Of a stretch of DNA of 64,000 nucleotides, positions 8,972 through 56,093 are shown in pieces (position 1 is the first letter of the stretch; each line of letters opens with the position of its first letter). The notes under the pieces are model-generated. The model was not told where the DNA came from, ran no database searches, and saw nothing but the letters and a program-made list of their open reading frames with translations. The position numbers and the translations under genes are program-made. The stretch covers positions 124,001 through 188,000 of IMG/VR virus record IMGVR_UViG_3300025000_000053; one strand, written 5' to 3'.

Positions 8972-9004
8972 ATTTTTTATCTCCTTTATATAAATAATAT
9001 ATTT

Positions 9005-10249
9005 TTACTTCTCTTCATTAAATCCATACACATCTAACATTAGTGTATTTATATATAAAGCATTAACATATACTAATAATCTATAAGTTGAATATATATT
9101 AACATTTTTTGTTATAAGTGTTAATGTATTAAAATCAATATCATATTCACCTATATCTCTATTTAACATTTTATTATCCATCATAACAGAAAATTTTAAA
9201 ATTGTTTCTAATGGAATACCATGAGTTAAACAATAGTCAATAGATGCTAGTATAGAGTTATTTAATACTTGTTTTATATTCATTAAATCAGGCATAGTAT
9301 CACTTTCAACTTTATATAAAGGATATGCATATAAAGTCCATCCATTAGGCATTTGTTCACTAAATAAATTATTTATTGTAAACATGGGTATTATTTGATT
9401 TTTATTATCAATAATCGACATATCAGTTTGTGTTATTATTCCTGAGGATTGTGTTACATAATAATATAAACCGGCTCCATTAAATTCTGTTGAGATTGTA
9501 AAAGTCGTAGCATATGAATCGGCAACCATTCCTTTCTTGTTACCATCATCAATAGCTAAATTAGAAAAAATTGTATCTATATTAACAGGATAAAATCTAA
9601 AAAATTCATCATTAGATGAAGCGTTCTTTACTTTATAAGTTACTGGATATATAGATACACTATTTATATAATCTAAAAAAGTTTTAATACTTCCATCAGG
9701 AGTATACAAATCAATTCCTATATCTTTAGATAAAAGTTCCATAAGCCCTCTAGGAACATAGCTTTCTAAACATGTTTCTAAAAAAAATGGTTTATCTTGT
9801 CTTATTCTATTCTTCAAATAATTAGCTTGATTTAATTGTTGTATTTGCGTATCTGTTACTATTGTTACATCAAAATACATTTTTATACGATTTAATAAAT
9901 ATTTTATATATACACCTTTTGTTTTATCTTCAATAAATGGTTGTAAATTACTAAAATCTATATCCATAAAATTATCTGTAATTCTAGTAGTTAAGTATGT
10001 TCCGTAGAGAAATGTGTCACTATCATCTAATTCAATTCTTGGTTTAATTATTAATATAGGTTTATTCTTTTTTATAAATTCTCTATTTGAGTTTTGAAAT
10101 ATATTGAATTGTTTATAAGCTATAGTAGAACTAATATGAATTGTTTTAAAATAATTTGGAACAAATAAACCTCTAACAAATTCTGTCATAAAAGAAGTGA
10201 TATTACCAAAAGTATGTGCTAAAGATGTTTGAGCCATAGCATATTCCAT
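9005..10249 (-). CDS. Putative jumbo-phage virion/core protein
   Basis: 414 aa; RBS GGAGG; late-type promoter AACA-TTCATT-TA at 10279-10290. Confidence 0.45.
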   Translation of the reverse strand: MEYAMAQTSLAHTFGNITSFMTEFVRGLFVPNYFKTIHISSTIAYKQFNIFQNSNREFIKKNKPILIIKPRIELDDSDTFLYGTYLTTRITDNFMDIDFSNLQPFIEDKTKGVYIKYLLNRIKMYFDVTIVTDTQIQQLNQANYLKNRIRQDKPFFLETCLESYVPRGLMELLSKDIGIDLYTPDGSIKTFLDYINSVSIYPVTYKVKNASSNDEFFRFYPVNIDTIFSNLAIDDGNKKGMVADSYATTFTISTEFNGAGLYYYVTQSSGIITQTDMSIIDNKNQIIPMFTINNLFSEQMPNGWTLYAYPLYKVESDTMPDLMNIKQVLNNSILASIDYCLTHGIPLETILKFSVMMDNKMLNRDIGEYDIDFNTLTLITKNVNIYSTYRLLVYVNALYINTLMLDVYGFNEEK

Positions 10250-17534: not shown

Positions 17535-19955
17535 TTAAATATGTGTTCCTCTGTCTTTAAGTTCTGATTTTTTAGCACTATTAAACATATTTATTGTACT
17601 TAAATATCCTGTAATTCTTCTTACTCTATTAATGTCTTCAGAACTACAACTCGGACATTCTTTAGGATATACACCTGAATAATTACATGAACGACAAAAA
17701 TCAACTGGGAAGTTAATTCCACCATAACCAACATCACAATCTTTCATATATTTAATAATATTAATTACAGCTTCAGTATTGTGAAGAAATGGGGATGTTG
17801 ACTCAATATAAGTAATATGACCAGCATTACAATATTTATGAAAAGCTCCTTCTAACATAATTTTTTTAAACCAACTGATTTCATAACCTACTGGTATATG
17901 AAAACTATTAGTATAATATTCTTTATCAGTAACACCTGGAATTATACCAAATTGTTTTCTATCAAGTCTTAAAAATCTACCAGATAATCCTTCAGCCGGA
18001 GTTGCTAATAAAACTATATTAATTTTTCTTTTAAGTGTTTCTTTATCAGAAAATTCTCTCATTGTTTTTATAATATTTAAACCAAGTTCATAAATATTTT
18101 TATCTTCTCCATGATGTTTACCAGTTAAAGCTACTAATGCTTCCGCAAGACCAATAAATCCAATTGACATAGAACCATGTTTAATAGCTTCTTCTATTTT
18201 ATCATTATACCCTAATTTATCAGAATCTAGATATAAACTTTGACCCATAATAAAAGGCATATCTCTTACAAGTAGATTCTTCTGTATGTCATATCTATGA
18301 TTAAGTTGATCAAATATAAGATTTGACTTACTTTCAAGTAATGTAAAAAACTTTTCAATACTACCTTTTGCTTCTATTGCAATTCTAGGTAAATTTAATG
18401 TTGTAAATGATAAGTTACCTCTCTTATCTGTAGTTTCAGGTCCATTAATATTACCAATAACCCTAGTTCTACAACCCATATAAGCTACTTCAGCGTCACC
18501 TGTGTATTGCTTATTAAAACTAGAATCCATAAATGAAAAAGTTGGATTTAATTTAGTACCAGCTATTTCACATGCTAATTTAAATAAGTCATAATTAGGG
18601 TCTCCGGGTTCCACATTTACACCATCTTTAACTTTAAAGATAATATTTGGAAAAATTGGATTTTCCCCTTTACCTAAACCTGCTTTATATGCAAGTAAAA
18701 TATTCTTTGTTACTTTCCTACCAGCATCACTCATATCAGTACCAATATTTAAACTACTAAAAGGGACCTGTGCCCCAGCCCTAGAATGCATACTATTTAA
18801 ATTATAAATAAGGGCCTCACAAGCTTGATAAGCTTCATTATCATTAGCATCAACAAAAAAATCAGCCATATCACGATCAAAAAAAGCAAATGATTGACCA
18901 CCATGCATATCCACTGTACCGCCTCTTTCGAGGTATTTCAAACGGGTTAGACTATATCATATACCTATTTTTTTATTATAGGCACCCTGGCACTTCGGAT
19001 CGGGATTTTCACCCTAATTACCCCTACTCTACTCGCTTCGTGTATCAAATTGATACCTTATTTTATACACCAAAAAGTGTATTAGCTTTCGATAGTCGTT
19101 AGCGTTTCTCTACTATTTTTTAAAATATTAGAGCTTACGACGGTATTACCTGCTATCCTTATTTCAGGACCGTAGGCTCTCTTAGAAAGTGTATTCATTA
19201 CTATTATAACTATAATAGTATTTATTTAACTTTTACCGTTAGCCAGATATAATATCCGACACCCATCTATTGATGGTTCACCAGGTTATTCAATGCACAT
19301 TACTGTACAAGGGAACAAATTAATTATTCTGGGCACTTTGTAAAACTATAGCTGCTAATGCAGTTGCACTACTTGTTCTTTTAGGTGGTCTAATCCAACC
19401 ATGTCCATTATCAAAACCTTTAGTTAATATTTCCTTAAGCGGTATTTGTAAACAAGTTAAGGTTTTTCCATAAAAATCCAAATCATGTATATGAATAGAC
19501 CCATCTATATGAGCATTTGATATTTCTTCAGGTATCAATCTAGATAAGTAATACTTTCTTGATGCCTCACTTGCAATTTGTAACATTTTAGCCATTGGAC
19601 CTGTACCAATGTTAGCATTTTCTCTTGAAGTTTCTTTTAATATATCTTCAACACAATCCATCAATTCACTCTGACCTTCTCTAATACGTGTTCTTTTATT
19701 TCTATATAAAATATACGCTTTTGAAGTTTTAGCTCTACCATTATTAATTAAAACAGTCTCAACAACATCTTGTATGTCTTCAACATTATGTATATCTTTA
19801 CCTAAATTTTCTAATCTGTTATAAACTTCTAATGCCAATTTAAAAGAAGTCGAATTATCATTACCACCTAAAGATTTTGCTGCTTTAAAAATACAACTAG
19901 CTACTGTTTCAATACTAAAATCAACTATTCTACCATCACGTTTTCTAACTTGCAT
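17535..19955 (-). CDS. nrdD: Anaerobic (class III) ribonucleoside-triphosphate reductase, spliced (exons 19955-19326 and 18911-17535, ~668 aa)
   Basis: N-terminal ATP cone, IHIHDLD, junction QSAQN|DMHGGQS, YMGCRT, YYTNSFH, CxxC...CxxC, glycyl-radical RRITGYL. Confidence 0.95.
18912..19325 (-). mobile_element. Group I intron (414 nt, no ORF) in nrdD
   Basis: P1 GAAU|AA:UUGUUC; core ACGACUAUC and GAUAUAGUCU; terminal hairpin CCUC-GAAA-GAGG; final G at 18912; splicing restores the frame. Confidence 0.9.
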
Positions 19956-22014: not shown

Positions 22015-23226
22015 TTATACAATCAAATTATTTAATTCAATACGAGATATTTGTGATGTTGAATTATGAAATTTCTTCATTGATAAATTAACTAATGTAG
22101 ATGATACTCTTGCCGAAGTTAATCCAATATTAGTTATATTTAATTTTTCATACATAAGACCAGCACACACTCGACATAACTTTTTAGATACATTTCCCAT
22201 TGGAGTTCTCATTTTAACTTTATTACCAATATATTTATTTATATTATCATCATCCAATAAAATTAGTTTATTTCTTTCCATAATATATCTATATATATAA
22301 TCATTAATATTTTCTTTAGTTATTTCTACCTCCATTAATGCTTTAGAACCACAGTCACTACCTTTTTCATCCAAAACAACAGCTTGTAAAGCTGCAATAA
22401 TTTTTTTAGAAAAATAACCAGAATCAGCTGTTCCAATAGCTTTAGGATATGCACCCGTTATAATAGCATTTCCGTAAACAGCTAAATCTTCTTTTTTTAT
22501 ACCTTCCATTAAACAATTTTCAACAAAATCAAATTCACCTGTAGATGGATTATATACCGGACCTTTCATAATATTAGTGTTTTTATAGTTATTACTGAAA
22601 GTACCTCTAGCACCTGATTTATATAATTCATATCCAGTGTCATCTTTTAATTCTTCTTCAGCTAATTGTATTAGCTCTTTTTCAATTTTAACTGCTGTTA
22701 TTATATCCCCTTGTTTTAACTTTTCCTTATTTTCTTTTATTAATTTATTCTTCAAATCAATAACTTTAGGAATAGGTTTAAATAATTTCATAGTATATGA
22801 ACCTGAAATAACAATATGAAATTGTTGAGCTAACCATTGAATATCATTAAGATAATTAACCATAATATCAACAGATATTTTATCATTTAATAAAGCTTTA
22901 GAAAGTTTATTTTCTATTTCTGAAAGTACTTTCTTATCTATAGTTTTATTAACATAACCAAGAATATTAACTAAATTTCTTTCAATTATATATTTATTAT
23001 AAATAAATAAACCTATATTAGTTGTAACTTTTTCTTTGTTAAAATATTCATTTGGTTTTAAATCAAATTCATCCCAGGTTTTAAATCTACTATTAATAAC
23101 ACTGACTTTACCGTTATTATCTTTTTTAATACTATCACCAAATAGGTTTAATAATAATTCAAATGTTATATCTTCTGGTTTTAAACTTAATATATATTCT
23201 TTATCCTTTTGATTTATCATTCCCAT
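22015..23226 (-). CDS. Phage RNA polymerase beta' C-terminal part; probably the virion RNAP
   Basis: SGARG, bridge helix GTADSGYFSKKIIAALQAVVL..DCGS, Zn site CRVC, trigger-loop-like NIGL...LSMKKFH; late-type promoter at 23260-23271. Confidence 0.88.
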   Translation of the reverse strand: MGMINQKDKEYILSLKPEDITFELLLNLFGDSIKKDNNGKVSVINSRFKTWDEFDLKPNEYFNKEKVTTNIGLFIYNKYIIERNLVNILGYVNKTIDKKVLSEIENKLSKALLNDKISVDIMVNYLNDIQWLAQQFHIVISGSYTMKLFKPIPKVIDLKNKLIKENKEKLKQGDIITAVKIEKELIQLAEEELKDDTGYELYKSGARGTFSNNYKNTNIMKGPVYNPSTGEFDFVENCLMEGIKKEDLAVYGNAIITGAYPKAIGTADSGYFSKKIIAALQAVVLDEKGSDCGSKALMEVEITKENINDYIYRYIMERNKLILLDDDNINKYIGNKVKMRTPMGNVSKKLCRVCAGLMYEKLNITNIGLTSARVSSTLVNLSMKKFHNSTSQISRIELNNLIV

Positions 23227-23339
23227 TTTATTTTATCACTCCTTCTGTATTTTATTGATTATAAATTTGTTTTGGTTTATATAAAAATAAAAAATTTATA
23301 TAATTGATATTATAATATCAATTATATAAATTAATTTTA

Positions 23340-24203
23340 TTATGATGTATATATGCGGTAAATAATAGTTAAGTCTTTAGATAATTGTAATAATTCATTA
23401 CCGATATTTAATTTAGAAAATAGTTTAACTTGTTTAAAATCATATGAACCATCGGCTAATTGACTTCTAATACCAGTAAACAAACCAATGGAATTAATCC
23501 TAGCCTGTTCAATATTACCATTAAGTTCAAACCATTCTCTTACATCAGTTTTATTTATCTTTAAAATAATTTCAATAAATGTTTCGATTGGTTCTGTACG
23601 AGTTGTATCTTGAACACCGGCTTGTACTTCAGTGCCATCCTCATCACCTTCAGCATCTTTCCAAAGAACTTTAATCTCTGGAGTAGCTTCAAATTTTTTT
23701 AAATAATATGCTTTTTTACCATCAACTAATACTTTTTTAAACCAATATTTTTCAGCATCCTGTTCAGAAAGAGTATCTGTAATAACTCTAAAAGGTACCA
23801 TATCAAAAATTTCTCTTTCATAGAATTTAACATCTAAAACAGAAGTTATTGAATCACCACAACCACCAGTACCAACACCGAAAAGACAAATTAATGTATC
23901 TTTAGGATAAATATCAGTTACGGGTGTTCCAGTTGTAGCTATACCCATAATATTATTTAAATAATCAACTGTTAAAGGAGATGCTACACCAAAAATCTTT
24001 TCCAAAACAAATAAAGCTCCACCTAACACTATTTGATTCTCTTCTTCAAAAAGAATTTCACCCAATTCAGTAATACCTTTTTCATTTACTGTAGGATTAA
24101 ATCCTCCTATTATTTTAGTTCTTTGTAAAACATTTGGTTTAAATTCAAAAGATAAAATATCATTTGAATTAAGGTTATCTTTTTTTTTAATAATTTTATC
24201 CAT
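23340..24203 (-). CDS. Baseplate/tail-collar fibre-like virion protein
   Basis: NQIV...GVGTGG...INSIGLF...LTIIYRIY pattern resembles tail-collar (DUF3751-like) domains; late promoter at 24242-24253. Confidence 0.5.
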   Translation of the reverse strand: MDKIIKKKDNLNSNDILSFEFKPNVLQRTKIIGGFNPTVNEKGITELGEILFEEENQIVLGGALFVLEKIFGVASPLTVDYLNNIMGIATTGTPVTDIYPKDTLICLFGVGTGGCGDSITSVLDVKFYEREIFDMVPFRVITDTLSEQDAEKYWFKKVLVDGKKAYYLKKFEATPEIKVLWKDAEGDEDGTEVQAGVQDTTRTEPIETFIEIILKINKTDVREWFELNGNIEQARINSIGLFTGIRSQLADGSYDFKQVKLFSKLNIGNELLQLSKDLTIIYRIYTS

Positions 24204-24253
24204 TAGAATATTCCACTTCCTTCCTTTACTATTCGTTATCTTATTTATTTGTT

Positions 24254-36821: not shown

Positions 36822-37787
36822 TCAACTATTTAAATACTCTTGTAATATACCAATTATACTGGTAAAAACTTTATCATTTTTTATTGTAAATCCAGCAGCT
36901 TTAGCATGTCCTCCACCACCGAAATATTTCTCAGCCCATTTACCTAAATGGACATCATTTTTATTACTCCTTAAATCAACCTTACCCGATGTTAAATCAA
37001 TCATTAGTGCAACATCAATTTCAGGATATTTTTCACATATTTTATTACCTAGAATACTAATAAAACCTGTAAATGAATCAATAAATACAATACCGGCCAC
37101 ATACCCTTGGATTTCAATTATATGAACTTTTTCCAATTTCTTTTTAATAAATATATCTTCTTTATCTCTCATTCTATTCACTAATATTCTTAACTCAATA
37201 TTAATTAAATCTTCTCCATTTTTAATATTAGTTTTTATATTATTTTTAAAAAGTTCTAATCCCATTAAACTGCACGCTATACTTAAATCATATGCTTCAA
37301 AATTTTTATTCTTATACCATCTATAAGTATCATATTCAGTTACAAGTTCTACAAATTTATACAATTTCCAATAGATCCTACTAAATAATGTTTTATCATT
37401 CATACTCTTATTATAGTATTCAGTTATTAATTCGGTTCCTGATGTTAATCTACCAACCCTTTCACTTATTACTTCAGCCCAGGAATAACGATTTAAAAAC
37501 TTATTCGTATCATGATGATCTCTTAAAACTACTTCAAAATCAGGTCTATTACTTATATATGAATCTATAAGTTTGGCTGTTTCTAATGGAACACCCATAT
37601 CAGTGATAATTAATTTATCAAATTTATCAGCATGATTATTTAAAAAATCCTGAACTATTGTTCCTATTTTGAGTCTATCTACAAATCTAGTATACACTTT
37701 ATTACCTAAAGCTTCTTCAAATATTTCAATAACTACACCACAACCAGCACCATCTAGATCCCTATCAGTAAACGATTGAACATTCAT
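36822..37787 (-). CDS. DHH/DHHA1 phosphoesterase (NrnB-like)
   Basis: DRDLDG, ITD, RDHH, GGGGHAKAAG; early motif at 37829-37838. Confidence 0.88.
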   Translation of the reverse strand: MNVQSFTDRDLDGAGCGVVIEIFEEALGNKVYTRFVDRLKIGTIVQDFLNNHADKFDKLIITDMGVPLETAKLIDSYISNRPDFEVVLRDHHDTNKFLNRYSWAEVISERVGRLTSGTELITEYYNKSMNDKTLFSRIYWKLYKFVELVTEYDTYRWYKNKNFEAYDLSIACSLMGLELFKNNIKTNIKNGEDLINIELRILVNRMRDKEDIFIKKKLEKVHIIEIQGYVAGIVFIDSFTGFISILGNKICEKYPEIDVALMIDLTSGKVDLRSNKNDVHLGKWAEKYFGGGGHAKAAGFTIKNDKVFTSIIGILQEYLNS

Positions 37788-37845
37788 TATTCAACATCTC
37801 CCTATAATTTATTTTTATCTTTATTTAAATAATATATAAATAAAA

Positions 37846-37892: not shown

Positions 37893-38510
37893 TTATCCAG
37901 TAATTGAACTTTGTATAGAATTTAAAGAACCAGTAATTATTGATAATGATTCTTTAATCATATTATTTGCTGAATTTATTGTTTCAGTTAGAGGTATTTG
38001 ATTTGAATTATCAATTGTTTGTTCTGAGCCATTTAGTGTATCACCATATAATGGTCGTAAAGTTACAGCACTTTCTTGTAAAGTATACATATTAAGTTTA
38101 TTATCTTGTTTTTCTTTAGCAACATAATTTTCAATATGAAGTTTTATCCATTCTTGAATATCACCATATGTCATAGTTAAATAACTTGTTACTTCTGAGG
38201 ATAATGTATTTAACACTGTCTTAGTTGCTTTTTCTGTAAGAACAGCAATATCAGTTTTTGTCAATTTTCCATCTGATGCAGCTAGCTTCAGATCACCAAC
38301 AGTTGTTTGATTTAAAGCTACAACAACTCTTTGAATTGTACCTAGAGCAGAATCAATATATTTATTAACTTTTTCATCCTTAACTTTTTCTTTTACAATA
38401 TTAATTTTTGTATTAAAAAAAGTAGATGCTTGTGCTCCTAAAACTGTAACAAGAATGGTTGTAATACCTAGAATTAATTGTACAATAGGACTATAATTAC
38501 TTAAATCCAT
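37893..38510 (-). CDS. Holin-like protein (LL-H family-like)
   Basis: N-terminal TM helix IVQLILGITTILVTVLG, then VVALNQT...IENYV pattern; late promoter at 38536-38547. Confidence 0.55.
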   Translation of the reverse strand: MDLSNYSPIVQLILGITTILVTVLGAQASTFFNTKINIVKEKVKDEKVNKYIDSALGTIQRVVVALNQTTVGDLKLAASDGKLTKTDIAVLTEKATKTVLNTLSSEVTSYLTMTYGDIQEWIKLHIENYVAKEKQDNKLNMYTLQESAVTLRPLYGDTLNGSEQTIDNSNQIPLTETINSANNMIKESLSIITGSLNSIQSSITG

Positions 38511-38549
38511 AATTTAAAACCCCCTTTGATTTTTTTAATTAGTTGTTTA

Positions 38550-39884
38550 TTATATATTTTTAAATTTATTTTTCACTTCTTCTGATTTACCACATGTCAG
38601 ATTACCCTCTTTACATTTTCCTTTAACACATGGTGGTTCAGCCTCTTCAAATAATATCTTTGATATTTTCTTTAATTCAATAACTTTTTTAGTTGAATTT
38701 GTTCTTATTTCTGTTTGAGCCGTCATACATAACCTATCCTTTAACATCTCAACATCAGCCCTTGCATTATTACTTATAAAATATTTTATCATATCACAAT
38801 TTAATAATAATGGTAATACTGAAATGTAATTTTTATTTTTAATATATAATTCTAATCTAAATTTTTGTATTTCAGAAATTAAATTCATATATGAATCAAT
38901 AAAAATAGAGTTTTTAATTGATTCAGGAACATAAACTTCCCTATTTTCATTAATAATAATATCAGATAATTCTTCTCTTACTATAGTTGGAATTCTATGT
39001 CTTATTTGTTGATGATAGGATGCTAAACTACATGATAATATGAAAGAACTTCTACTATGTTCAGCTATACCTTTATGACCATAATCAAGAACTCTTTTTA
39101 TAAGTTTCTCTAATTCATCTTGATTGTCTTCATATTTATCAACATATGTTTCCGTTGGTGATTGTTGTGTGCTCGTAAGTGCTGCCAATCCAACATTTTT
39201 ATTATTATATAAATGATTTATATTTAATAATCTACATTCACCAATTTTATTTATACCATTAAATAAATGTAATTTAAGTGATTCAAATAAGCTATTATGT
39301 TTATAATTATCTTGTGTTTTCTTAAAAGTATCTACTGACAGTCCAAAACCAGATAAATATAATTTCTCTATTATTAAATTAATTAATTCATCATTAATAT
39401 AGGGGTATTCCCCTAAATAAAATAACATATCAATCAGTTTATCACCAGTTAATGAAACAGTAATATTTGTTTTAGTCGCTAAAGGTAAGATATATCGTGC
39501 ATCTTCAAATGTGATACCATGTTTAAAATCTTCTACTTTAGGTCTACCAACACAACCTTCTCTCAATTCACTCATTTGTGAATATAAGTTAAAACCTTTT
39601 TCTATTAAGTTATGGGCCTTTTCAGTATCTTCTCTCTCAAATTCTTTTATTTTATTATATGCATCTGAATTCATTTGAACATATCTTTGACTTTGTTGAA
39701 CATAAGAATCTTTACATTCACATATTAAAGTACTCTGAACTCTATTAATACCCTCCAATATAAAAAAAATATTTGTGAATTTTAATAAATCACGTAATTC
39801 ATTCACAGAGGGTTTAAGTTTACTATCCTGTATAAAATGTTTAATATTTAATAAACCACCAACAGATACAACACTAATTTCCAT
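38550..39884 (-). CDS. thyX: FAD-dependent thymidylate synthase, tandem-domain ThyX
   Basis: SYVQQSQRY and EDARYILP in the first half; HQQIRHR, R.C..AQ.EIR in the second. Confidence 0.8.
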   Translation of the reverse strand: MEISVVSVGGLLNIKHFIQDSKLKPSVNELRDLLKFTNIFFILEGINRVQSTLICECKDSYVQQSQRYVQMNSDAYNKIKEFEREDTEKAHNLIEKGFNLYSQMSELREGCVGRPKVEDFKHGITFEDARYILPLATKTNITVSLTGDKLIDMLFYLGEYPYINDELINLIIEKLYLSGFGLSVDTFKKTQDNYKHNSLFESLKLHLFNGINKIGECRLLNINHLYNNKNVGLAALTSTQQSPTETYVDKYEDNQDELEKLIKRVLDYGHKGIAEHSRSSFILSCSLASYHQQIRHRIPTIVREELSDIIINENREVYVPESIKNSIFIDSYMNLISEIQKFRLELYIKNKNYISVLPLLLNCDMIKYFISNNARADVEMLKDRLCMTAQTEIRTNSTKKVIELKKISKILFEEAEPPCVKGKCKEGNLTCGKSEEVKNKFKNI

Positions 39885-39924
39885 TTTCTAATTACCCCTT
39901 TTATTTTTTATTTTAACTAATTAA

Positions 39925-41295
39925 TTAGTTAATATTTCTTAAAATTGTAATAATTCTTTCTGCTTCAATTCTATCACTATTTTTTTCTTCTTCACTTAAA
40001 TTTTCATAGCAGGTATCTATTTGTCTAGCCCATCTTTCAACAAATTCTTGAGGTATAGTAAGTGATCCATTTTCATTTGTAATACACTTAGTAAATAAAT
40101 ATTCCATCCAACCTGACCACATTTGATGACATAAATCAGATAATGTTTCTTTTATTTTATATAAATTTTCTGTCATTTCATCAAAATTAATTTTATTAAC
40201 AATATTATTTTCTTTCATATCACCATTTAAAAATTTAATAATATTACTATAAATTTTACACTTTTCTAACTCTTTTAGTTGAAAAGAAATTTCTCTCTTT
40301 TCTTCTATTAATTTAATAATTCTTTCTCTTTCTTCTGTAGCACCCTTCTCTTTATTTAGTTGAGCCAATTGTTCTAATGTATCAATACGTTGTTTCTCAC
40401 ACCAATTAGGTTCTGAATCAGGCAAAAAGTCTATCATCCTTTTCATTTCCTCTATTTTTTCTTGTTCTAATTTAATTAAATCTTTAATTTGAATTAATTC
40501 AATACCTGTATCTTTTAATAAGTTAATAGCTTCAATATCATTATAAAGTTCATCATATATAACTCTTTTAATACCTTTATGAATAATCATTTTAGCACAT
40601 AAAAAACATGGTGAACAATTAACAAACAAGTCGGCATCACGTGCATTATCACCAGCTTTATCTAAAGCTTGAAATTCAGCATGTACTGAATTACAAATAT
40701 CTGCTCTAGTGCCAGAAGGTATATTTTCTTTTTTTCTTCTACATATATCTTTACAATTAATAGTGTAATTATAGGCTTCTGCAATAATCTCATTATTTTT
40801 TACAATAACACAACCAACTTTTCTACTTAAACATGTGGAATTTGTAGATAATTTATAACATTTTTCCATATATTCACTATATTTAAATTTTATTAGAGTA
40901 CTTTGTTTCCGATGTAAATAACAATCTAGTTCTTTTGGTTTATGAATACCAGCACAATCCATTTGATGTAACTGAAAACAATTTTCACATTCTTTATATA
41001 ATGAGGTGTCGTCTAAAAAACATTTTATTTTTATAGGACCATCAAAAATATCACCTTCTCTATTAACAAAAATTCCTATACATTGATGTGTTTTAAAAAA
41101 GTCACAATTATCACATTTTCCTGTTACAAAAAATGTTTTAGTAATTTCCATTTTTTTATCTTTCATACATTCAACTCCTTTAGATTTTTCATAAATAGAA
41201 CCATACTTATTAATATAAAAACCAAAACAAGGATAAGATTTATATCTACACCCCAAACATTTTTCTATTAAATTGTATTCTCTTATATCATCCAT
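39925..41295 (-). CDS. dCMP deaminase-family protein with a Cys-rich N-terminus and an RyR-like C-terminal domain
   Basis: CLSRKVGCVIV, HAE, PCFLC; multiple CxxC at the N-terminus; LSDLCHQMW...YENLSEEEKNSDR at the C-terminus. Confidence 0.8.
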   Translation of the reverse strand: MDDIREYNLIEKCLGCRYKSYPCFGFYINKYGSIYEKSKGVECMKDKKMEITKTFFVTGKCDNCDFFKTHQCIGIFVNREGDIFDGPIKIKCFLDDTSLYKECENCFQLHQMDCAGIHKPKELDCYLHRKQSTLIKFKYSEYMEKCYKLSTNSTCLSRKVGCVIVKNNEIIAEAYNYTINCKDICRRKKENIPSGTRADICNSVHAEFQALDKAGDNARDADLFVNCSPCFLCAKMIIHKGIKRVIYDELYNDIEAINLLKDTGIELIQIKDLIKLEQEKIEEMKRMIDFLPDSEPNWCEKQRIDTLEQLAQLNKEKGATEERERIIKLIEEKREISFQLKELEKCKIYSNIIKFLNGDMKENNIVNKINFDEMTENLYKIKETLSDLCHQMWSGWMEYLFTKCITNENGSLTIPQEFVERWARQIDTCYENLSEEEKNSDRIEAERIITILRNIN

Positions 41296-41321
41296 TTTAT
41301 TTTCATCCCTTATAATAATAT

Positions 41322-42077
41322 TTAAGTAATTTTAATATCATGAATATAACTGGTATAGTCCACATTAAATTTCTTATTAATAACTTGAATAATCTTTTCT
41401 GTTATTTCTTCTTTATTTGACATTTCATCCTTATTAACTTCAGACATACAATCAATTCTTTCCCATCCACATAATTGAATAACGGTTTCTTTTATTCTGT
41501 TTAAAGCATATTGATGATCTTTCTTTTCATGAATATCATTTATATCTTTAATATTTTCTCCACTACGATTTTCTAAATTTTTTATAACTTTTCTTATATT
41601 AACATCTAGAAATATAACTAAATCAGGTTTTGGTAATTTAAATACTCCGTATTCAATATAATGAATCCAATCAGCATATGAAAATATATCACTTACTATA
41701 CCATTTAATTGTAAATTAGCAGACATATGTAGTATATTTGAAGTTGTATATCTATCACAAATTATATTCATACCTTCTTGTAATTTTTCATAATAACTCT
41801 TAGTATTATTTTTTTTATTGAATAAAGTATATATTCTGTCTACAGTATAAAAACTAGAAGCTTGTTTTATATAAGATAACACATCTAATCCATCATTCTT
41901 ATTAAAATTACCTTCTAAATATTTCTTAACTAAGTAAGATGAATTATCTTCATAATTAGGAAATGATAATAGTTTAGTTTCAACTGATAAGAAATTTAAT
42001 AAATTAGTTAATAATTTAGATTGGGTTTCTTTCCCCGACCCATCAACACCTTCAATAACAATTAGTTTACCTTTCAT
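41322..42077 (-). CDS. tmk: Thymidylate (dNMP) kinase
   Basis: IVIEGVDGSGKETQ, ICDRYTTS, PDLVIFLD. Confidence 0.9.
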   Translation of the reverse strand: MKGKLIVIEGVDGSGKETQSKLLTNLLNFLSVETKLLSFPNYEDNSSYLVKKYLEGNFNKNDGLDVLSYIKQASSFYTVDRIYTLFNKKNNTKSYYEKLQEGMNIICDRYTTSNILHMSANLQLNGIVSDIFSYADWIHYIEYGVFKLPKPDLVIFLDVNIRKVIKNLENRSGENIKDINDIHEKKDHQYALNRIKETVIQLCGWERIDCMSEVNKDEMSNKEEITEKIIQVINKKFNVDYTSYIHDIKIT

Positions 42078-42191
42078 TTTTTTACCTCCTTTTTTATAAA
42101 AAAATAATTATAATATAGTTACCAAAAAAATTAAAAATTACTATTAAAGTAATTTTTAATTTTAATAATATAATGATTTGAGTATATTAAT

Positions 42192-45204: not shown

Positions 45205-45281
45205 AATTATTCATTCTCCCTTTTATAAAATTATTCATTATATCTTTTATATAATGTAACTTATATAATAATATATAAATA

Positions 45282-45935
45282 AAAAATTAGTATAAGGATA
45301 AATATATTTTCTATTATGAAAATATATTTATCCTTATACTAATCTCAAGATTATTTTTACATATAAAAATAGTGTAACTCCCTCTCCGATGGATATTATC
45401 AAGGGGGCAGTAGGGTGCTTCGTTTATATTTTTACAATATGCTTCGGTAATACTAGTGAATTGGTTTATTAATATTATTATTTGTATGTTTGCGTTAATG
45501 CTCTGTTTTATTTTTTATATTAACGATAAATGTTAATATTGGGCATATCAATTGATATGCCCAATATTTTTATCAATATGCTTTGTATTATAATTTATAT
45601 GTATATAATATTATATACATATTATTATTATTTAGAACCAGTTTAGATTAAATAAATTTATCTTTATGATATGTTTATGTATAAGTTTTTTTTAAATTTA
45701 GAATTAATCTTTCAGATTAATCAATACTTTTACCCTACTGCCCTTGAGCGATTTTCAATTATTGTCTGTTCTCACAGACAATAATCTCAATCATGGCCTA
45801 CAATTCACTCGCGTGAACGCCCCCTTGATCCAAAATCGTCAATATAAATTATGTAACGACGAATCATTACAATTGTAATTTATACTAACGATTTTACACA
45901 TCTTCATATTGATAAAAACATAAAGATGCTGGATT
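45282..45935 (-). ncRNA. Candidate large structured non-coding RNA (~650 nt)
   Basis: No ORF; late-type promoter at 45935-45946; terminator at 45287-45342; GNRA hairpins on the minus strand; long-range GC-rich pairings. Confidence 0.55.
45287..45342 (-). terminator. Strong intrinsic terminator closing the ORF-free unit
   Basis: 25-bp stem TTAGTATAAGGATAAATATATTTTC / GAAAATATATTTATCCTTATACTAA, followed on the minus strand by a U-tract. Confidence 0.75.
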
Positions 45936-45976
45936 AATTATATGTTCAATTAAATTATTTTTAATTTATTAAATTT

Positions 45977-50456: not shown

Positions 50457-53400
50457 TTGATTTTTATTTCTGATATACCACATTTAAAAACCTATAAGCA
50501 AAAAGTTCTATTACCTAAAGATGAGAAGTATCCTAGTATTAATAGTGTAGTTTTTATTATTAATAATAACATACAATCATCTATAGGACTATTAAACCAT
50601 CAATTTATTAAGAATAATAACATGTATCATTTTTATTTTATGGATCACGTATATAACGGTAAATTATTTAATAGAACTTTTAGAGTTTTATATCGTAATG
50701 AAAGAAATGATATTTATAATAATATAGAAAAAGAAGTTCGATTCATACAAACAGTTCTAGATTTACATTCAGTAAATAAGAAAAATATATATGTTGATTT
50801 AATAAAACATAATAGTTTATTCTTTCAATTAAGTAAAAAAGTTAATTTTACAATTCGTATTAAAAATTATATAGATTATCTAGATAAGTTAATTAATGAT
50901 AGTCATTTTAATCAGTATAAGTATAAAACTATTTGTATTGATATTAATAGTTGGGTTAGTGATTTAAAGACTCAAATAAAAGGTAAATTAAATTTTGATA
51001 ATCCAATATTTATTATTTATTATTGTATGTATAAATACCTTGAAAAATTTAAAGAACTAGGGGATATTAATATTATTTTCTATACTAATGATAGTGTATT
51101 AAGATTAAATCCTTCATTATGTGATAAAAGCTCATATTCTTTATTTAAGAAAGAGATTATCAAAGCGTCTCCTAAAAGTTTATTAGATATGAGTGAAGAT
51201 AATATTGAAAAAGTACTAAAAAGAAAAGATGTTGCTGATAAAATAATAGGATATCTTAATGACCAACATAGATTTGTTGGTGATGATAAAACTGAAGAAG
51301 ATGAAAATTTTGAAACTAGTATTGAAGATAAAGTAGATGAAATAATTGATGCTAATAAGTTAGATAATAATAGTAATGATGAGATGTATAGTGAAGTTTC
51401 AAAAGTTATTATTAATGATGATGAAATTATAAAAAAAATTCATATGATGAATCAAGAGAATAAAGTTGGTAGAAGTACAGCTTCTATTAAAAGGGACGAA
51501 GAATTAAGAAAAAGACAAAAAGAGATAATAAAAGATAAAATAGGAATAGATAATATCTATGAAACTAATAAAGAACAACTAGATATTCCTAAATTTGATG
51601 TTACAGATAAAGTTAATACTACTAATAAAAATGTAACTACTATAAGATATCCTCAATTTGAAAAAGCTTATAATGAAGTTCTTCATGAAAAGGATTTACT
51701 TAATAATATAAAATTTTTAAATGAAAAATCTATTCCAGTTTATATTAGAGGTATAGAACGAGTTGATTCATCCGATGAATTAAATTTAAAAGAAACATAT
51801 ACTTTTGATTTAGAAGATGAAAATAGAGTTAGGCATAAATTAAAATTTGATATCCCTAAATTTATAGATGATAAATTTTTATATCTTGGTGGTAATAAAA
51901 AGATTATTATGAAGCAATTATTTATGAAGCCAGTGGTTAAGACTGGACCAGATGAAGTACAGATTTGTACTAATTACAATAAGATGTTTATTAGACGCTA
52001 TGGTAATAAAATATCATCTAAAATAGAAAAAATGAGAAAATTATTATATGAACAAAAAGAAGGTAAAGGTATTAAAGTTAAATATGGTAATAATTTATCT
52101 ATTAATAACAAATATGATACTACTATAGAATATGATGAATTATCTAAAAGCTTTACTTATATCCGTATAGGTAAAACTGAATTTTATTTTAATCAAGATG
52201 ATGCTACAAATATAGTTAAAGATAAAAAAATAAAACTTAATCAAAATGAATTCTTATTAGGTCTTATTGAAAATGGTAAAAATCCAATACCTATTACAAT
52301 TGATAAAAATACTCAAAAAATAGGCACATCTTTCGATATAGTTGACTATATACTTTCTATGTTGACACAAGGATTAGTGCAAGATTTTGATGATACTAAA
52401 AGTGGTAAGAAATTTGTTTACACTAGAGCTTATATAATGGAAAGACATGTTCCAGTAGTTTTGTTAATTTCATTCTTAGAAGGTTTATCTACAGTAATAA
52501 AAAAAGCTAATATTAAACATTATTTTTCAGATAAAAGACCTAAAGATATTACTCATAATGAGGGAATAATTCAATTTAGTGACGGGTATTTAATATATGA
52601 AAAATATCCATTTGAAAATTCTTTATTAATGAATGCATTTGCAGATATTCCAACTAAAACTTTCGAATATGGTGAATTTGATTCAAAAGATGTTTATTTA
52701 TCTTTATTTGATACTTTATATGGTAATAGGATAATTGGTAATGCCTTTCTTAACTCATATGAATTTTTAATTGATCCTATTACAAGAGAAGTATTAGAAG
52801 ATTTAAACTATCCAACAGATTATGTTTCTTTAGTTTTATATGCTAATTCTTTATTAGCAACTAATTCATATATTAAAGAAAATAATATGAATTTATATAG
52901 AATAAGATCAAATGAACTGGTTAATGCCTTATTATATAAAGAAGTTGCTAATGCTTATATTAAGTATAGAACTACTTCTTTAAATAATAATCCTGTTAAA
53001 ATTTCTGTACCACAAGATGTTATTATTAAAAAGATACTTGTTGCACAGACAGTCGAGGACTACAGCACATTAAATCCTATAACCGAAGTCGAGAAATCCC
53101 GTATGATCAGTCCAAAAGGACATTCAGGAATGAACCTGGATGAAGCGTATACACAAGATAAAAGAGCATATGATAAAACGATGCTTGGTATAATAGCTAT
53201 GTCAACTTCACCGGATTCATCGTGTGGAGTAACAAGACAACTTACATTAGAACCCAATATAAAAAATCCGAGGGGATATATCGATATAAATGACGATAGA
53301 TTAGAAATTTTAAAAGATGCAAATCTATTTTCTCCAGCTGAATTATTATCTCCTCTCGGAAATACAAGGGATGAACTTGCTATTGTCCCACTATGTAGAA

Positions 53401-56093
53401 ATATATAGTTAAAAACTCTTCTAATTGTCGGGGACATCCTTAACGCTCTTATTACCAAACTAATATAGTAATATATTAGTGGTGAAGGGTAATGCCTTAG
53501 GTATGGTAACAAGATAAGAGATTGGGTTATCCGCAGCTAAGATTCCTATAAATTTTATAGGAATAAAGTTCAAAGACTATCGAAAGCATGTTTATTATTG
53601 ATATAAAATATAATAAACAGAAGTGAGTAGAGTAGGGAAACCGAAACGGAGAGCATCTGAACACATAATGGTGAAGATGATGATATAGTCTGTCACTTAT
53701 GGAAATCATAGGTGGTTCCTGGATAGCATAAGAACAGCGATAAATAAAACTTGTCGCATTATCTAGTAATAGATAAATAAAAAATCTCCTTAATTGTCGG
53801 GAAATCTCTTAGAGCCTAAAACTACTAAGTTATATTAGTAATAATATAATGGCTTAGTCTAATCAACTAAGGTATAGTAATAAGGTTTTAGGATTGAGTA
53901 ATCCGCAGCTAAGATTCTAATATATTAGAATAAAGTTCAACGACTATCGAAGGCAAACTTATTATAGAAATAAAAATATAATGAGTTTGTTAGTAGAGTA
54001 GGGCTCAAGTGAGTTCTGAAATGGGAGACTCCTTATTATTTAATAATAAGGATGAAGATATAGTCTTATATCCTAAGGAAACTTAGGGAAGTTCATAAAA
54101 GAACTGCATAGATTAACGATCTATGTGAAATAAATGGAGTGTAAAACAATCGAAACATATCGTACCTGTAGTTAAACAATCACCAGTTTTATTATCTAAT
54201 GGAGTTGAACAAGTTATTCAATATCACTTATCTGATGATTTTTCAGTTGTAGCTAAAGATGATGGTGAAGTTGTTGAGATAGATAGTGAAACTGGTTTAA
54301 TTATTATTAAATATAAAAATGGTGAAACTAAAGTAATTGATACAAGTCCAAAAGTTGTAAAAAATGGTAAACTAAATGCCCACTTATATGGTGACATATA
54401 TGTGAATCTTCTTTAATTGTCGGGGAAACTCTTAGAACTTTTTATTATATAATAAAAAGATTGAGTAATCCGCAGCCAAGTCTCATAGTAAAAAAAATAA
54501 AGTTCATGAAGAACTCTATTACAAAGATATTGGAAAATTTTATAAAAAATCAAATACTCCATGGTATTTTATTGTATAACAAAGTTGATGATGAGTTGAT
54601 CTGAGTTCTTTTTTAATAATTTTAAAATCTATATCTATCAAATATTTCTCTAATAAGGGAAGTGTTTCTTCAATGAATATATTAAAAAGTTCTAAGTTCT
54701 TTTTAGCTATGAAAAAGTCACTAATTTTTTTGATATCATTATTATATCTTTTTAGTTCATTTTCATACCTCTGGGTAAAGAATTTTTTAGTTAATTCTAT
54801 CGATATAGGATTACAAAACTCATCACTTAACTCATTAATATTCCTCATTATAATATCTTTGTAATTAATTTCTCCTTGCTTCATTTTATTTATCATTCCT
54901 TTCTTTTTTATATTACGTAAATAATATATAAATGAAAAATAATGAAATACTATGAGAAAGGTTCAACGACTATCCCTTTGGCTTTGAAATAAGCAATAGG
55001 AGTAGGGCTCAAGTGAGTGGGTGAGAATCCCTTAAATCGAAATAGGAAGCATCCTTATGAGATGAAGATATAGTCTAGTATCTTATCGAAAGATAAGGAA
55101 GTTCATAAGAGAACTGCATAGATTAACGACCTATGTGAATATATATCGGCTGGTGGTTTCTTCTTATCAAATAAATTAACATGTAATTTGAAAGTAGGGC
55201 AAAAAATAAAAAAACGAGATATATTAGCTTATGACAGTAACTTTTTTAGTAATAGTAAATTATATGGTAATAGATTCAATATTGGTTCATTACAGAAAAT
55301 AGCGTGTATGTCCTCATACTCAACATATGAGGATTCTACTTTTGTCACTAAGAAATTATGTGAAGATATGGCAACTGAGATTGTTATGGAAAAACCAGTT
55401 GTCTTAGGTAAAAATGCTAATGTTGATTATATTGTTGAAATAGGTCAAAATGTTAGTGTTGGTGATGAACTAATTAGATTTGAAGTTTCTTTTAAAGATG
55501 AATCACTAAATAAATTTCTTTCAAATATTGGAGATGAATTAAAAGAAGAAATTAAAGCAATGGGTAAAACACCTATTAAAACTAAATACTCTGGTGTAAT
55601 TGAAGACATTAAAGTATATTCAACTGTAGATGTAGAAGAACTATCTCCAACATTAAAAAAAATTGTTAATAATTATTATGATAGAATTAATAAGAAGAAA
55701 AAAATTATTAATAAATATAATAAAAGTGATTCTGTATATAAATGTGGTATAATGTTAAATGAACCTGTAACTAAGATTGAAACTAAAGATGGTAAAGTTA
55801 AAAGTCATACTGTTAATTCAGGAGTTTTAATTATATTTTATATTAAATATAAAGATACAGTTGGTGTTGGTGATAAGATATGTTTCTTTACTGCTTTGAA
55901 ATCTATTGTCGGTGAAGTTATCCCTGAAGGATATGAACCATATTCTTTATTTAGACCAGATGAGAAGATTTCTTCAGTGGTTGCTCCAGGAGCAGTAATG
56001 AATAGAATGACCCCTTCTGTTATTCTATCAATGTTCGGTAATAAAGTATTGATAGAATTAAAACGAAAATTAAAAGATATTTATGATGAATAA
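50457..56093 (+). CDS. Phage RNA polymerase beta part, spliced from 4 exons (50457-53372, 53722-53741, 54137-54368, 55149-56093; ~1370 aa); probably the virion RNAP
   Basis: KGHSGMN, STSPDSSCGVTRQL, junctions NTRD|DSIRTAM|SVKQSKHIVP and VVKNG|AGGFFL, VGDK, NRMTPS; lacks the extreme beta C-terminus; late promoter at 50409-50420. Confidence 0.9.
53373..53721 (+). mobile_element. Group I intron 1 of RNAP beta (349 nt, no ORF)
   Basis: P1 GGGAU|GA:UUGUCCC; P10 GAUAGCA:UGCUAUU; AAUUGUCGGG, AUCCGCAGC, GUUCAAAGACUA, GAUAUAGUC; ends in G. Confidence 0.9.
53722..53741 (+). other. 20-nt micro-exon GATAGCATAAGAACAGCGAT
   Basis: Bounded by the terminal G of intron 1 and the P1 of intron 2; encodes DSIRTA plus AT of the Met codon. 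Confidence 0.85.
53742..54136 (+). mobile_element. Group I intron 2 of RNAP beta (395 nt, no ORF)
   Basis: P1 GCGAU|A:UGUCGC; AAUUGUCGGG, AAUCCGCAGC, GUUCAACGACUA, GAUAUAGUC; ends ...AAAUG. Confidence 0.9.
54369..55148 (+). mobile_element. Group I intron 3 of RNAP beta (780 nt) carrying an antisense ORF in the P6 loop
   Basis: P1 GGU|A:UGCC; same core motifs; stem TCTCATAGTA (54481-54490) : TACTATGAGA (54948-54957) encloses a ~460-nt insert; ends ...AUAUCG. Confidence 0.88.
54540..54896 (-). CDS. Orphan ORF antisense within intron 3
   Basis: 118 aa (114 aa from the second ATG); RBS-like AAGGA; early-type promoter at 54921-54930; no LAGLIDADG, GIY-YIG or HNH motif visible. Confidence 0.65.
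   Translation of the reverse strand: MINKMKQGEINYKDIIMRNINELSDEFCNPISIELTKKFFTQRYENELKRYNNDIKKISDFFIAKKNLELFNIFIEETLPLLEKYLIDIDFKIIKKELRSTHHQLCYTIKYHGVFDFL

Follow-up and report, generated by a model that had tools for sequence, protein, structure and literature searches.

Introduction

The non-virion RNA polymerase (nvRNAP) of the Bacillus jumbo phage AR9 is the textbook case of a polymerase that needs deoxyuridine in its promoter, and every characterized member of the wider group to which it belongs (PBS1/AR9, S6, and phiR1-37) has uracil DNA (U-DNA). In AR9, the valine at position 206 of the promoter-specificity subunit gp226 clashes with the methyl group of thymine, whereas the V206G mutant accepts T (Fraser et al. 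2022, PMC9209446), and the recent literature that we read treats gp226 orthologs as belonging to known or presumed U-DNA phages. Moreover, PBS1 has a dTMP phosphatase (Dtm), which we equate with AR9 g151, since the primers given in PMC12697855 encode the two ends of this protein, as well as a dCTP deaminase (AR9 g221), while a dUMP kinase activity is known in PBS2 infection.

Here, we examined a stretch of 64,000 nucleotides (the window; positions 124,001 to 188,000 of IMG/VR record IMGVR_UViG_3300025000_000053) from an uncultured 250-kb phage. A sequence-only reading of this window had noted AACA-N6-TA late motifs together with a tmk-deaminase-thyX operon, and had offered two interpretations, namely that this phage has thymine DNA (T-DNA) and reads the same consensus without uracil, or that the tandem ThyX, whose first half lacks RHR, and the kinase make a modified pyrimidine. 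Our analysis confirmed what had been observed, though the interpretation was only partly supported, with the comparative evidence favoring the first of the two alternatives.

The thymidylate genes and the long ThyX

Three minus-strand ORFs, encoding a thymidylate kinase, a putative deoxycytidylate deaminase, and a long ThyX, are packed 26–40 nt apart as one tight unit (Table 1). In the deaminase, the HAE and PCxxC motifs are present and align with those of the best solved relatives, the dCMP deaminases of S. mutans and T4, and the alignment extends through the T4-like C-terminal segment, though the protein is also 27% identical to AR9 g221, and its substrate preference is here only inferred from sequence. 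For the kinase, the Pfam score (59.6 bits) is well above the curated cut-off of 27, but discrimination between dTMP and dUMP cannot be read from sequence. A megablast search of the region against phage records gave no match.

Table 1. Features of the window discussed in the text (positions are those of the 64,000-nt window).
Position	Strand	Feature	Basis
41322..42077	-	tmk, thymidylate (dTMP) kinase, 251 aa; first gene of the unit	Pfam PF02223 (Thymidylate_kin) 4.1e-16; NCBIfam dTMP kinase 1e-21; PHROG 761
39925..41295	-	CDA-fold deoxycytidylate deaminase (putative), 456 aa; catalytic domain at aa 139-272, Cys-rich N-terminal extension, long C-terminal extension of unknown role	Pfam PF00383 (dCMP_cyt_deam_1) 2.7e-20
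38550..39884	-	thyX, long (tandem) FAD-dependent thymidylate synthase, 444 aa	Pfam Thy1 7e-31 in two stretches
42109..42120	-	Promoter-like element of unresolved class, 40-44 nt before the tmk ATG; early-type core TATATTAT (42110-42117) overlapping an AACT-N6-TA variant	Read from the sequence
42124..42163	-	A+T-rich inverted repeat followed by a T run, between the upstream gene and the tmk promoter-like element; terminator-like	Seen by eye; not reported by a G+C-dependent scan
38536..38547	-	Late-type AACA-N6-TA site directly after thyX, 37 nt before the next gene (holin-like, 37893-38510); marks the end of the nucleotide unit	Motif search; PHROG holin 3e-17 for the downstream gene
36822..37787	-	DHH/DHHA1 phosphoesterase (NrnB-like), homolog of AR9 g157; own early-type TATATTAT 49 nt upstream (37829-37836)	Pfam DHHA1 2.8e-9; tblastn to AR9 g157; linked to thyX/tmk in relatives
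17535..19955	-	nrdD, anaerobic ribonucleotide reductase, interrupted by an intron-like stretch	Pfam NRDD 6.9e-150 and 1.2e-29 in two pieces; stops in the middle stretch
22015..23226	-	Virion-RNAP beta'-C-like subunit, homolog of AR9 g264; late AACA-N6-TA site before it at 23260-23271	39% identity to AR9 g264; motif search
24242..24253	-	Late-type AACA-N6-TA site 50 nt before the homolog of AR9 virion protein g259 (23340-24203)	Motif search; tblastn to AR9

As for the tandem ThyX, the N-terminal half has C-E-C where RHR should stand but keeps the S-x-R-Y block (as S-Q-R-Y), while the C-terminal half has RHR but lacks S-x-R-Y. A phmmer search against the PDB found nothing, but with a family profile the C-terminal half could be aligned to M. 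tuberculosis ThyX, including RHR. In fact, the protein is 40–47% identical to the ordinary chromosomal ~440-aa ThyX of Clostridia and keeps every residue that is invariant in that family, and the same distribution of RHR and S-Q-R-Y between the halves was seen in all 20 aligned family members. The missing RHR in the first half is a family-wide feature, offset by complementary motifs in the second. The two halves are predicted to form a pseudo-dimer, with each half contributing complementary active-site motifs. Moreover, this long form is the sole Thy1 hit, with no ThyA present, in three of the five bacterial genomes checked (Dehalobacter, Orenia, and Halanaerobacter), which is an indirect indication that it makes dTMP. 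The NCBIfam model TIGR02170 scored 80 bits, below its cut-off of 87.9, because it describes the single-domain form. An AlphaFold2 model from a 20-row alignment was poor (mean pLDDT of 64, active-site loops under 50) and is given no weight, and a literature search for the biochemistry of tandem ThyX returned nothing useful. We considered that the tandem enzyme might be degenerate or neofunctionalized, but rejected this based on the family conservation and the three genomes above.

Promoter words

The raw count of AACA-N6-TA is below chance, with 69 sites in the window against 104 ± 10 in shuffles, but the motif is nonetheless a real positional signal. In this genome, 32 sites lie 31–50 nt upstream of start codons, against about 2–4 per 10-nt bin elsewhere, and no such peak was found for N5 or N7 spacing or for permuted cores. 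The upstream sites are biased by strand (50 sense against 20 antisense), and in comparison with dinucleotide shuffles the motif is twofold enriched between genes (90 vs. 45 ± 6) and depleted inside them (126 vs. 175 sense and 73 vs. 167 antisense). AR9, run as a positive control, showed the same pattern, and the peak at 31–50 nt was seen in AR9 (44 sites) and in the relatives G003 (32), G002 (30), and G005 (25), these being our labels for related genomes. The sites occur upstream of the homologs of the capsid, prohead protease, virion RNAP, and virion proteins, in keeping with the AR9 late promoter word AACA-N6-T[AT], which lies about 10 nt before the start site. The early-type core TATATTAT peaks 41–50 nt upstream of genes both in this genome and in AR9, where it is the annotated early promoter core. 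A sigma-70 promoter scan fell below shuffled expectation and is uninformative for this phage.

Kinship with AR9 and the clade-wide contrasts

By tblastn, 82 ORFs of the genome match AR9, including g089, g105, g154, and g270 (nvRNAP) and g078, g145, g189, and g264 (virion RNAP), and a paralog tree separated the two RNAP sets with 100/100 support. Of the genes that had been proposed beforehand as worth seeking in the rest of the genome, we found two full-length gp226 homologs, at genome positions 7777-9315 and 235115-236626 (23–25% identity; E-values of 1.7e-19 and 7e-11), in synteny between primase and g227/GroEL, while no phage dUTPase is encoded and tblastn gave no Ugi homolog. No phage UDG is encoded either. 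The absence of Ugi means little, as the U-DNA phages S6 and phiR1-37 lack one too. PF00692 hits in the records G003 and G015 could be dUTPases or trimeric dCTP deaminases and were set aside. A tblastn search of phage records with the gp226 of this phage found nothing, and hence AR9 gp226 served as the query. The genome belongs to a large and widespread uncultured sister clade with at least 160 gp226 homologs, many on 200–260 kb contigs.

Three sequence signatures set this clade apart from the seven cultured known or presumed U-DNA relatives (AR9, BpSp, LPJP1, Machias, S6, SA1, and phiR1-37), though it must be borne in mind that the two groups are two clades, and so the contrasts are not independent events. 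First, among records picked by gp226 homology, all nine that are at least 90% complete have a thymidylate synthase (tandem ThyX in four, single ThyX in two, and ThyA in three) and eight of nine have Tmk, whereas ThyX, ThyA, and Tmk are each found in none of the seven cultured phages. Here, ThyA and ThyX alternate among close relatives on the tree, which argues for sustained selection for dTMP synthesis. Second, motif I of the Dtm homolog, D-C-D-E-V (HAD motif D-x-D), is intact in 6/6 cultured relatives, but the nucleophile Asp is Cys in this phage and is replaced in 16/16 clade members, and thus the protein is predicted to be catalytically dead. Third, gp226 residue 206 is Val in 7/7 cultured phages but Pro here, at a position anchored by the invariant Trp208. 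Over 120 metagenomic homologs, it is V (30), L (18), T (17), R (16), P (10), I (8), G (6), and others, while W208 and N204 stay fixed. As 30 of the 120 still have Val, this residue alone does not decide the base, and the pocket may simply be built differently. In addition, Lys375 of gp105 appears as Asn here, but in a pairwise alignment only, and is given little weight.

Interpretation

Taken together, we consider it probable that the window, from a ~230–250 kb jumbo phage distantly related to AR9/PBS1, belongs to a phage of anaerobic Bacillota with T-DNA read by an AR9-type nvRNAP. While the gene identities, the motif statistics, and the clade-wide contrasts come directly from our analysis, the enzyme activities (including the conversion of dUMP to dTMP by ThyX), the assignment of polymerases to promoters, and the base in the DNA are inferred from gene content and comparison, and the sequence-only reading was right that sequence alone cannot tell T from U. 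In this view, the phage, like AR9, would transcribe itself with a virion RNAP (early promoters, core TATATTAT) and an nvRNAP with a gp226-type subunit (late promoters, AACA-N6-TA, read on the template strand). Unlike AR9, it would build T-DNA through a pathway in which NrdD supplies deoxynucleotides, the deaminase turns deoxycytidylate into deoxyuridylate, ThyX methylates dUMP to dTMP, and Tmk phosphorylates dTMP. As the three genes form a unit with an early-type promoter-like element, they would be on before replication, and the late promoter would then read 3'-TTGT-5' on the template, with the gp226 helix that excludes the 5-methyl group in AR9 being rebuilt (Val206 to Pro, Tyr210 to Gln, and Asp204 to Asn).

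Alternatively, the DNA might carry a modified pyrimidine, such as 5-hydroxymethyl-dU or a hypermodified thymidine, with ThyX or ThyA and the kinase making or handling the precursor. ThyA-fold enzymes do include dUMP hydroxymethylases, which a Pfam hit does not separate, the deaminase has large unexplained extensions, the Dtm-like protein is conserved although predicted to be dead and so would have some other role, and jumbo phages often modify their DNA. However, we regard this as unlikely. The original argument rested on the tandem ThyX looking odd, which it does not when set beside the clostridial enzymes, no hydroxymethylating ThyX is known, and the interchange of ThyX and ThyA among close relatives points to their shared activity, dTMP synthesis. 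No gene for further thymidine modification came to light, though without a dedicated search.

It seems about as unlikely that the phage retains U-DNA, with the deaminase acting on dCTP, Tmk being the dUMP kinase known from PBS2 infection, NrdD making dUTP from UTP, and ThyX having some other or residual role. In support, the characterized members of the wider group have U-DNA, the late promoter consensus is identical, the deaminase is homologous to the PBS1 dCTP deaminase, a Tmk could act as a dUMP kinase, and no phage dUTPase or UDG is encoded. Against this, a thymidylate synthase is kept in 9/9 complete clade members and replaced by a non-homologous one rather than lost, none of the seven cultured relatives has Tmk, ThyX, or ThyA, the dTMP phosphatase that U-DNA phages need has lost its nucleophile, Val206 is not conserved, and the family-invariant residues of ThyX are intact. 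Finally, that AACA-N6-TA is a mere by-product of A+T-rich intergenic composition (the genome is 24.5% G+C and the raw count is low) is very improbable given the spacing-, order-, and strand-specific peak, its recurrence in three relatives, the depletion inside genes, and the presence of the matching RNAP and gp226 genes.

More tentatively, this clade may descend from a U-DNA ancestor and have gone back to thymine, by acquiring a host-type thymidylate synthase (swapped several times between ThyX and ThyA) plus Tmk, letting its dTMP phosphatase decay into a catalytically dead fossil, and loosening the uracil gate of gp226, while keeping the template-strand AACA promoter. A paralog-rooted RNAP tree puts U-DNA phiR1-37 outside a pair formed by the Firmicute U-DNA phages and this clade (support of 92/88 in one half, unresolved in the other), which favors one reversal over two gains. 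The natural gp226 variants (Pro, Thr, Leu, Gly, and Arg at position 206) would then be a ready-made series for learning how an RNAP tells U from T.

By the three sequence signatures, a clade that keeps the polymerase and the promoter word has most likely given up uracil or never used it. This separates two things that looked coupled, the template-strand promoter mechanism and the unusual base, and would mean that this promoter system does not have to depend on uracil. It also offers natural variants at the exact residue shown by mutagenesis to gate U against T. As a practical matter, relatives of AR9 found in metagenomes should not be assumed to carry U-DNA. The ThyX part by itself is ordinary.

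Comparison with described phages and enzymes

In comparison with AR9/PBS1 (Takahashivirus) and the cultured relatives BpSp, Listeria LPJP1, Staphylococcus S6/Machias/SA1, and Yersinia phiR1-37, this phage shares the jumbo genome with its 82 common ORFs and blocks of synteny, split beta/beta' genes for a virion and a non-virion RNAP, a gp226-type specificity subunit, early TATATTAT and late AACA-N6-TA words at the same distance from genes, and intron-rich RNAP genes. Yet identity is only about 25–27% in capsid and gp226, and in addition to the ThyX, Tmk, and Dtm differences above, gp226 has N204/P206/Q210 instead of D/V/[YF], and there is no Ugi and no class I RNR, but NrdD instead.

The altered residue 206 recalls the AR9 gp226 V206G mutant (Fraser et al. 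2022, PMC9209446), in which the change is at the position whose side chain abuts C5 of the -10 template pyrimidine, and the relative G005 has exactly Gly there. However, the mutant is an engineered single change in a U-DNA phage enzyme, whereas here the whole 2.1bis helix differs, the residue is Pro, and it varies freely across the clade, bulky Arg and Leu included, and so the pocket geometry probably differs as well.

The long ThyX (~440 aa, two Thy1 domains) of Clostridia and other Bacillota resembles the phage protein over its full length, including the C-terminal Cys cluster, though a few conservative substitutions lie near conserved blocks. While the phage gene is placed in an operon with tmk and a deaminase, the bacterial one is located in a housekeeping locus next to rlmB, sigH, and nusG.

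Lastly, the logic of deaminating C nucleotides, methylating dUMP, and phosphorylating is that of the T4-type dTTP supply (cd dCMP deaminase, td thymidylate synthase, gene 1 dNMP kinase, and nrdD with intron), and in this phage too the genes would be early and an anaerobic RNR carries an intron-like insert. Here, however, there is ThyX instead of ThyA, a dedicated Tmk instead of a broad dNMP kinase, and a deaminase with large extra domains, and the cytosine modification pathway of T4 would be a further difference.

Genetic organization of the thymidylate locus

The window is bases 124001-188000 of a phage record, a 249,853-bp IMG/VR entry with 24.5% G+C, and here the tmk, deaminase, and thyX genes described by the sequence-only reading could be confirmed as three closely spaced ORFs on one strand, separated by only 26 and 40 nt. 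The first of these is a dTMP kinase according to both Pfam (Thymidylate_kin, 4e-16) and NCBIfam (dTMP kinase, 1e-21). The second is a 456-aa protein in which residues 139-272 form a CDA-fold deoxycytidylate deaminase (PF00383, 2.7e-20), with its best solved relatives being the dCMP deaminases of S. mutans, T4, and cyanophage S-TIM5, in whose alignment the HAE and PCxxC zinc motifs coincide. Outside of this domain, residues 1-135 carry three Cys-rich repeats, and residues 280-456 make up a long charged region with no family match, whereas the copy in the close relative is 396 aa and more distant relatives have plain copies of about 170 aa or none. The third is a 444-aa ThyX with two Thy1 stretches (PF02511, 7e-31).

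Upstream of tmk lies a 114-nt spacer that holds an A+T-rich hairpin with a T run, then a promoter-like element 40-44 nt before the ATG, and then a strong ribosome-binding site. Directly after thyX there is a late-type AACA-N6-TA site, which is 37 nt before a holin-like gene, and so the three genes form one unit. In the closest groundwater relatives (loci L025, L026, and L027), a protein with an Acb2/Tad1 hairpin domain, an anti-CBASS/Thoeris sponge family, follows thyX at the position of this holin-like gene. Moreover, a further jumbo relative (L030, an ENA contig of 235,747 bp) clusters Tmk, NrdD, NrdG, a 172-aa deaminase, a DHH phosphoesterase, and the long ThyX within 7 kb, a fuller nucleotide-supply island than the one found here.

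Coordinates of the features described, numbered within the window, the whole record (genome), or a related locus
Feature	Reference	Position	Strand
tmk, dTMP kinase	window	41322-42077	-
CDA-fold deoxycytidylate deaminase	window	39925-41295	-
thyX, long (two Thy1 stretches)	window	38550-39884	-
nrdD, interrupted by an intron-like stretch	window	17535-19955	-
Gene-free stretch with inverted repeats	window	45205-45976	
Virion-RNAP beta homologue, pieces	window	50622-53408 and 55308-56093	
Two adjacent group I introns (RF00028)	window	53368-53713 and 53732-54088	+
gp226 homologue, first	genome	7777-9315	
gp226 homologue, second	genome	235115-236626	
Homologue of the PBS1 dTMP phosphatase	genome	12049-12744	-
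Head and tail versions of one 21-kb region	genome	1-21181 and 228254-249853	
Protein with Acb2/Tad1 hairpin domain, after thyX	locus L025	11358-11729	

Promoter motifs

When simply counted, AACA-N6-TA is not enriched, as the window has 69 sites against 104 +/- 10 in dinucleotide shuffles. Instead, the signal is in where these sites lie. Over the whole genome, 32 sites fall 31-50 nt upstream of start codons, against roughly 2-4 per 10-nt bin elsewhere, while no such peak is seen with N5 and N7 spacings or with permuted cores. Upstream sites are 50 sense to 20 antisense. Moreover, against shuffles made separately for genes and spacers, the motif is depleted in genes (126 vs 175 sense; 73 vs 167 antisense) and doubled between genes (90 vs 45 +/- 6). 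AR9, where these promoters are experimentally established, gave the same picture with our crude ORF calls, with 44 sites in the same two bins and 84 vs 39 between genes. The downstream genes include the homologues of the AR9 major capsid protein, prohead protease, virion-RNAP subunits, and several virion proteins.

The AR9 early-promoter core, as taken from the 33 annotated AR9 early promoters, also peaks 41-50 nt upstream of genes here. It precedes the gp226 homologue, an nvRNAP beta piece, ligase, gyrase A, the DHH phosphoesterase, and, in a slightly off-consensus form, tmk. In addition, the hexamer GAGAAC is over-represented 20-70 nt upstream of genes in the whole genome (10 genes against 1.4 expected), and could mark a third promoter class or an operator.

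Relationship to the AR9 group

Of our 270 ORFs, 82 hit AR9 by tblastn at 22-49% identity and in syntenic blocks, and these include all pieces of the non-virion and virion RNAPs. Two full-length gp226 homologues are found, because the first 21 kb and last 21 kb of the record are 81-89% identical versions of the same region, and GroEL, the DNA polymerase, and an nvRNAP piece likewise appear twice. The record therefore probably joins two co-occurring strains, with the true genome being nearer 228 kb, and the same sample also holds contigs with 100% and 93% identical gp226. In the phage collection, the capsid protein finds only the AR9 group (Staphylococcus S6-like phages, AR9/PBS1, BpSp, Listeria LPJP1, and Yersinia phiR1-37), all at 23-27% identity, which makes this a deep relative and not a close one.

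Two adjacent group I introns (Rfam RF00028, 61 and 60 bits) lie between the pieces of the virion-RNAP beta homologue, and the AR9 counterpart, g189, is also split by several introns. Likewise, the anaerobic ribonucleotide reductase gene nrdD is interrupted by a stretch of roughly 0.4-0.5 kb full of stop codons, between an N-terminal piece of about 210 codons and the rest. This looks like an intron, as in T4 nrdD, though the Rfam gathering scan did not flag it. A 772-nt gene-free stretch holds G+C-rich inverted repeats and a 20-bp A+T hairpin but matched no Rfam family or tRNA, and is possibly a structured RNA or a regulatory or origin region.

Tandem ThyX

A word-based search for ThyX returned 216 homologues. 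Following two phage relatives, the best of these are chromosomal proteins of ~440 aa from Clostridium, Alkaliphilus, Halanaerobiales, Negativicutes, Dehalobacter, and Heliobacteria, at 40-47% identity. In a 20-sequence alignment, the phage protein keeps every invariant column. Here, the lack of RHR in the first half that the sequence-only reading had pointed out is correct, but it is a pattern of the family as a whole. The N-half has C-E-[LC] where RHR would be but keeps S-Y-V-Q-Q-S-Q-R-Y, whereas the C-half has RHR but lacks S-x-R-Y, as shown by the profile alignment to M. tuberculosis ThyX. Since canonical ThyX builds each active site from several subunits of a homotetramer, the likely meaning is a fused pseudo-dimer whose halves have divided the motifs between them, though this is an inference for which our AlphaFold model was of too poor a quality to serve as a test.

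In one bacterial contig, the gene sits in a housekeeping locus with rlmB, yacP, sigH, secE, and nusG. Moreover, among five bacterial genomes checked, three (a complete Dehalobacter chromosome, Orenia metallireducens, and Halanaerobacter jeridensis) have no ThyA and no other Thy1 protein, and there the long form must be the thymidylate synthase, unless those organisms are thymidine auxotrophs. The ThyX of this phage is thus ordinary.

Comparative tests for uracil or thymine DNA

Markers for this comparison were available from the literature. In AR9, the -10 and -11 template positions must be U, Val206 of gp226 abuts C5 of the -10 base, the V206G variant accepts T, and the valine is reported as absolutely conserved in gp226 of U-DNA phages (PMC9209446). 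In PBS1, the "dCMP deaminase" is really a dCTP deaminase, and a HAD-family dTMP phosphatase (Dtm) removes thymidylate (PMC12697855). The published cloning primers encode the two ends of AR9 g151, and so g151 is that Dtm. To obtain an unbiased sample, we collected IMG/VR records by gp226 homology and searched the large ones whole.

With regard to thymidylate synthase, all nine records (this genome included) that CheckV rates at least 90% complete encode one, being tandem ThyX in four, single-domain ThyX in two, and ThyA in three, but never both. Eight of the nine have Tmk, and three of five incomplete records also have a synthase. In contrast, the seven cultured relatives have no ThyA, no ThyX, and no Tmk. 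On a tree of the clade, ThyA and ThyX carriers are interleaved, and the function has been kept while the gene was replaced.

As for Dtm, this genome and every clade member have a homologue, with a pairwise E-value to AR9 g151 of 3e-4 and with the copy of one clade member (G005) hitting g151 directly. Motif I of the six cultured phages is invariantly D-C-D-E-V, whereas in all 16 clade sequences (including those of loci L262-L271) the nucleophile Asp is Cys, Thr, Met, Gln, Glu, Ile, Ser, or Val. The conserved E-K-K-S-D block that holds the motif III lysine in the cultured phages is also missing, and the two groups split with 100/100 support. This homologue, catalytically dead as judged from its sequence, is nonetheless conserved in all 16 members with a fixed Tyr after the lost Asp, and presumably has a new, non-phosphatase role.

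For gp226, with Trp208 as an invariant anchor and no gaps nearby, the cultured phages read D-x-V-[IM]-W-x-[YF], while this phage reads N-K-P-M-W-E-Q. Close and distant clade members have Thr, Leu, Gly, Gln, Ile, or Val at position 206. Among 120 metagenomic homologues, this position is V30, L18, T17, R16, P10, I8, G6, A5, and others, whereas N204 (105/120), W208 (118/120), and Q210 (101/120) are fixed. So, the residue that gates uracil in AR9 is under no such constraint here. Because Val persists in a quarter of the sequences and bulky residues are tolerated, we read this as a rebuilt pocket rather than a simple switch.

All three comparisons point the same way, though they are contrasts between two clades and so not independent events, and it is the repeated synthase swaps that speak for continuing selection. 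Of lesser weight, no Ugi homologue was found in this genome, but S6 and phiR1-37 lack one too. The genome also encodes an anaerobic NrdD and no class I RNR, and no dUTPase, ThyA, or UDG.

Proposed pathway and direction of change

The observation of the sequence-only reading, namely a thymidylate gene unit together with AR9-type late motifs, stands. Its interpretation is partly supported, in that of the two possibilities it raised, thymine DNA read through the same consensus is the one that these comparisons support, but a modified pyrimidine made by the tandem ThyX and the kinase loses its footing with a ThyX that is ordinary. In the most likely scheme, early transcription by the injected virion RNAP would switch on tmk, the deaminase, and thyX. 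Deoxycytidine nucleotides, from NrdD or from host DNA breakdown, would then be deaminated to the uridine form, ThyX would methylate dUMP using methylene-tetrahydrofolate and reduced flavin, and Tmk would make dTDP, with host kinases finishing dTTP to feed the replication of a genome that is 75% A+T. Late genes would next be read by the non-virion RNAP, whose gp226 homologue would recognise the template-strand complement of AACA, now carrying thymines. While the genes, the motif distribution, and the differences between the clades are observed directly in the sequences, every step in this scheme, including the enzyme activities and the base in the DNA, is inferred from homology.

To consider the direction of change, we used a tree of the beta'-C subunits in which the virion and non-virion paralogues root each other. 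Here, the clade is monophyletic in both halves (99/99 and 100/100). In the non-virion half, phiR1-37 is placed outside a pair formed by the Firmicute U-DNA phages and this clade (92/88), whereas the virion half is unresolved. Together with the decayed Dtm, this mildly favours a return from uracil to thymine over two separate inventions of U-DNA, though long-branch effects for phiR1-37 cannot be excluded.

Comparison with known systems

In the open-access papers searched, including a 2026 review of jumbo phages, we found no mention of such a group. Taken separately, the parts are all of known kinds, and include an AR9-type transcription system, a clostridial long ThyX, Tmk, a CDA deaminase, and a T4-like logic for dTTP supply. 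What is new is their combination and its spread, as this is a large uncultured branch of the AR9 group with at least 160 gp226 homologues, many on 200-260 kb contigs and some binned with Herbinix or labelled Romboutsia. Of real interest for work on phage transcription and DNA modification, this branch keeps the uracil-associated promoter system but carries the marks, on present evidence from sequence alone, of thymine DNA.
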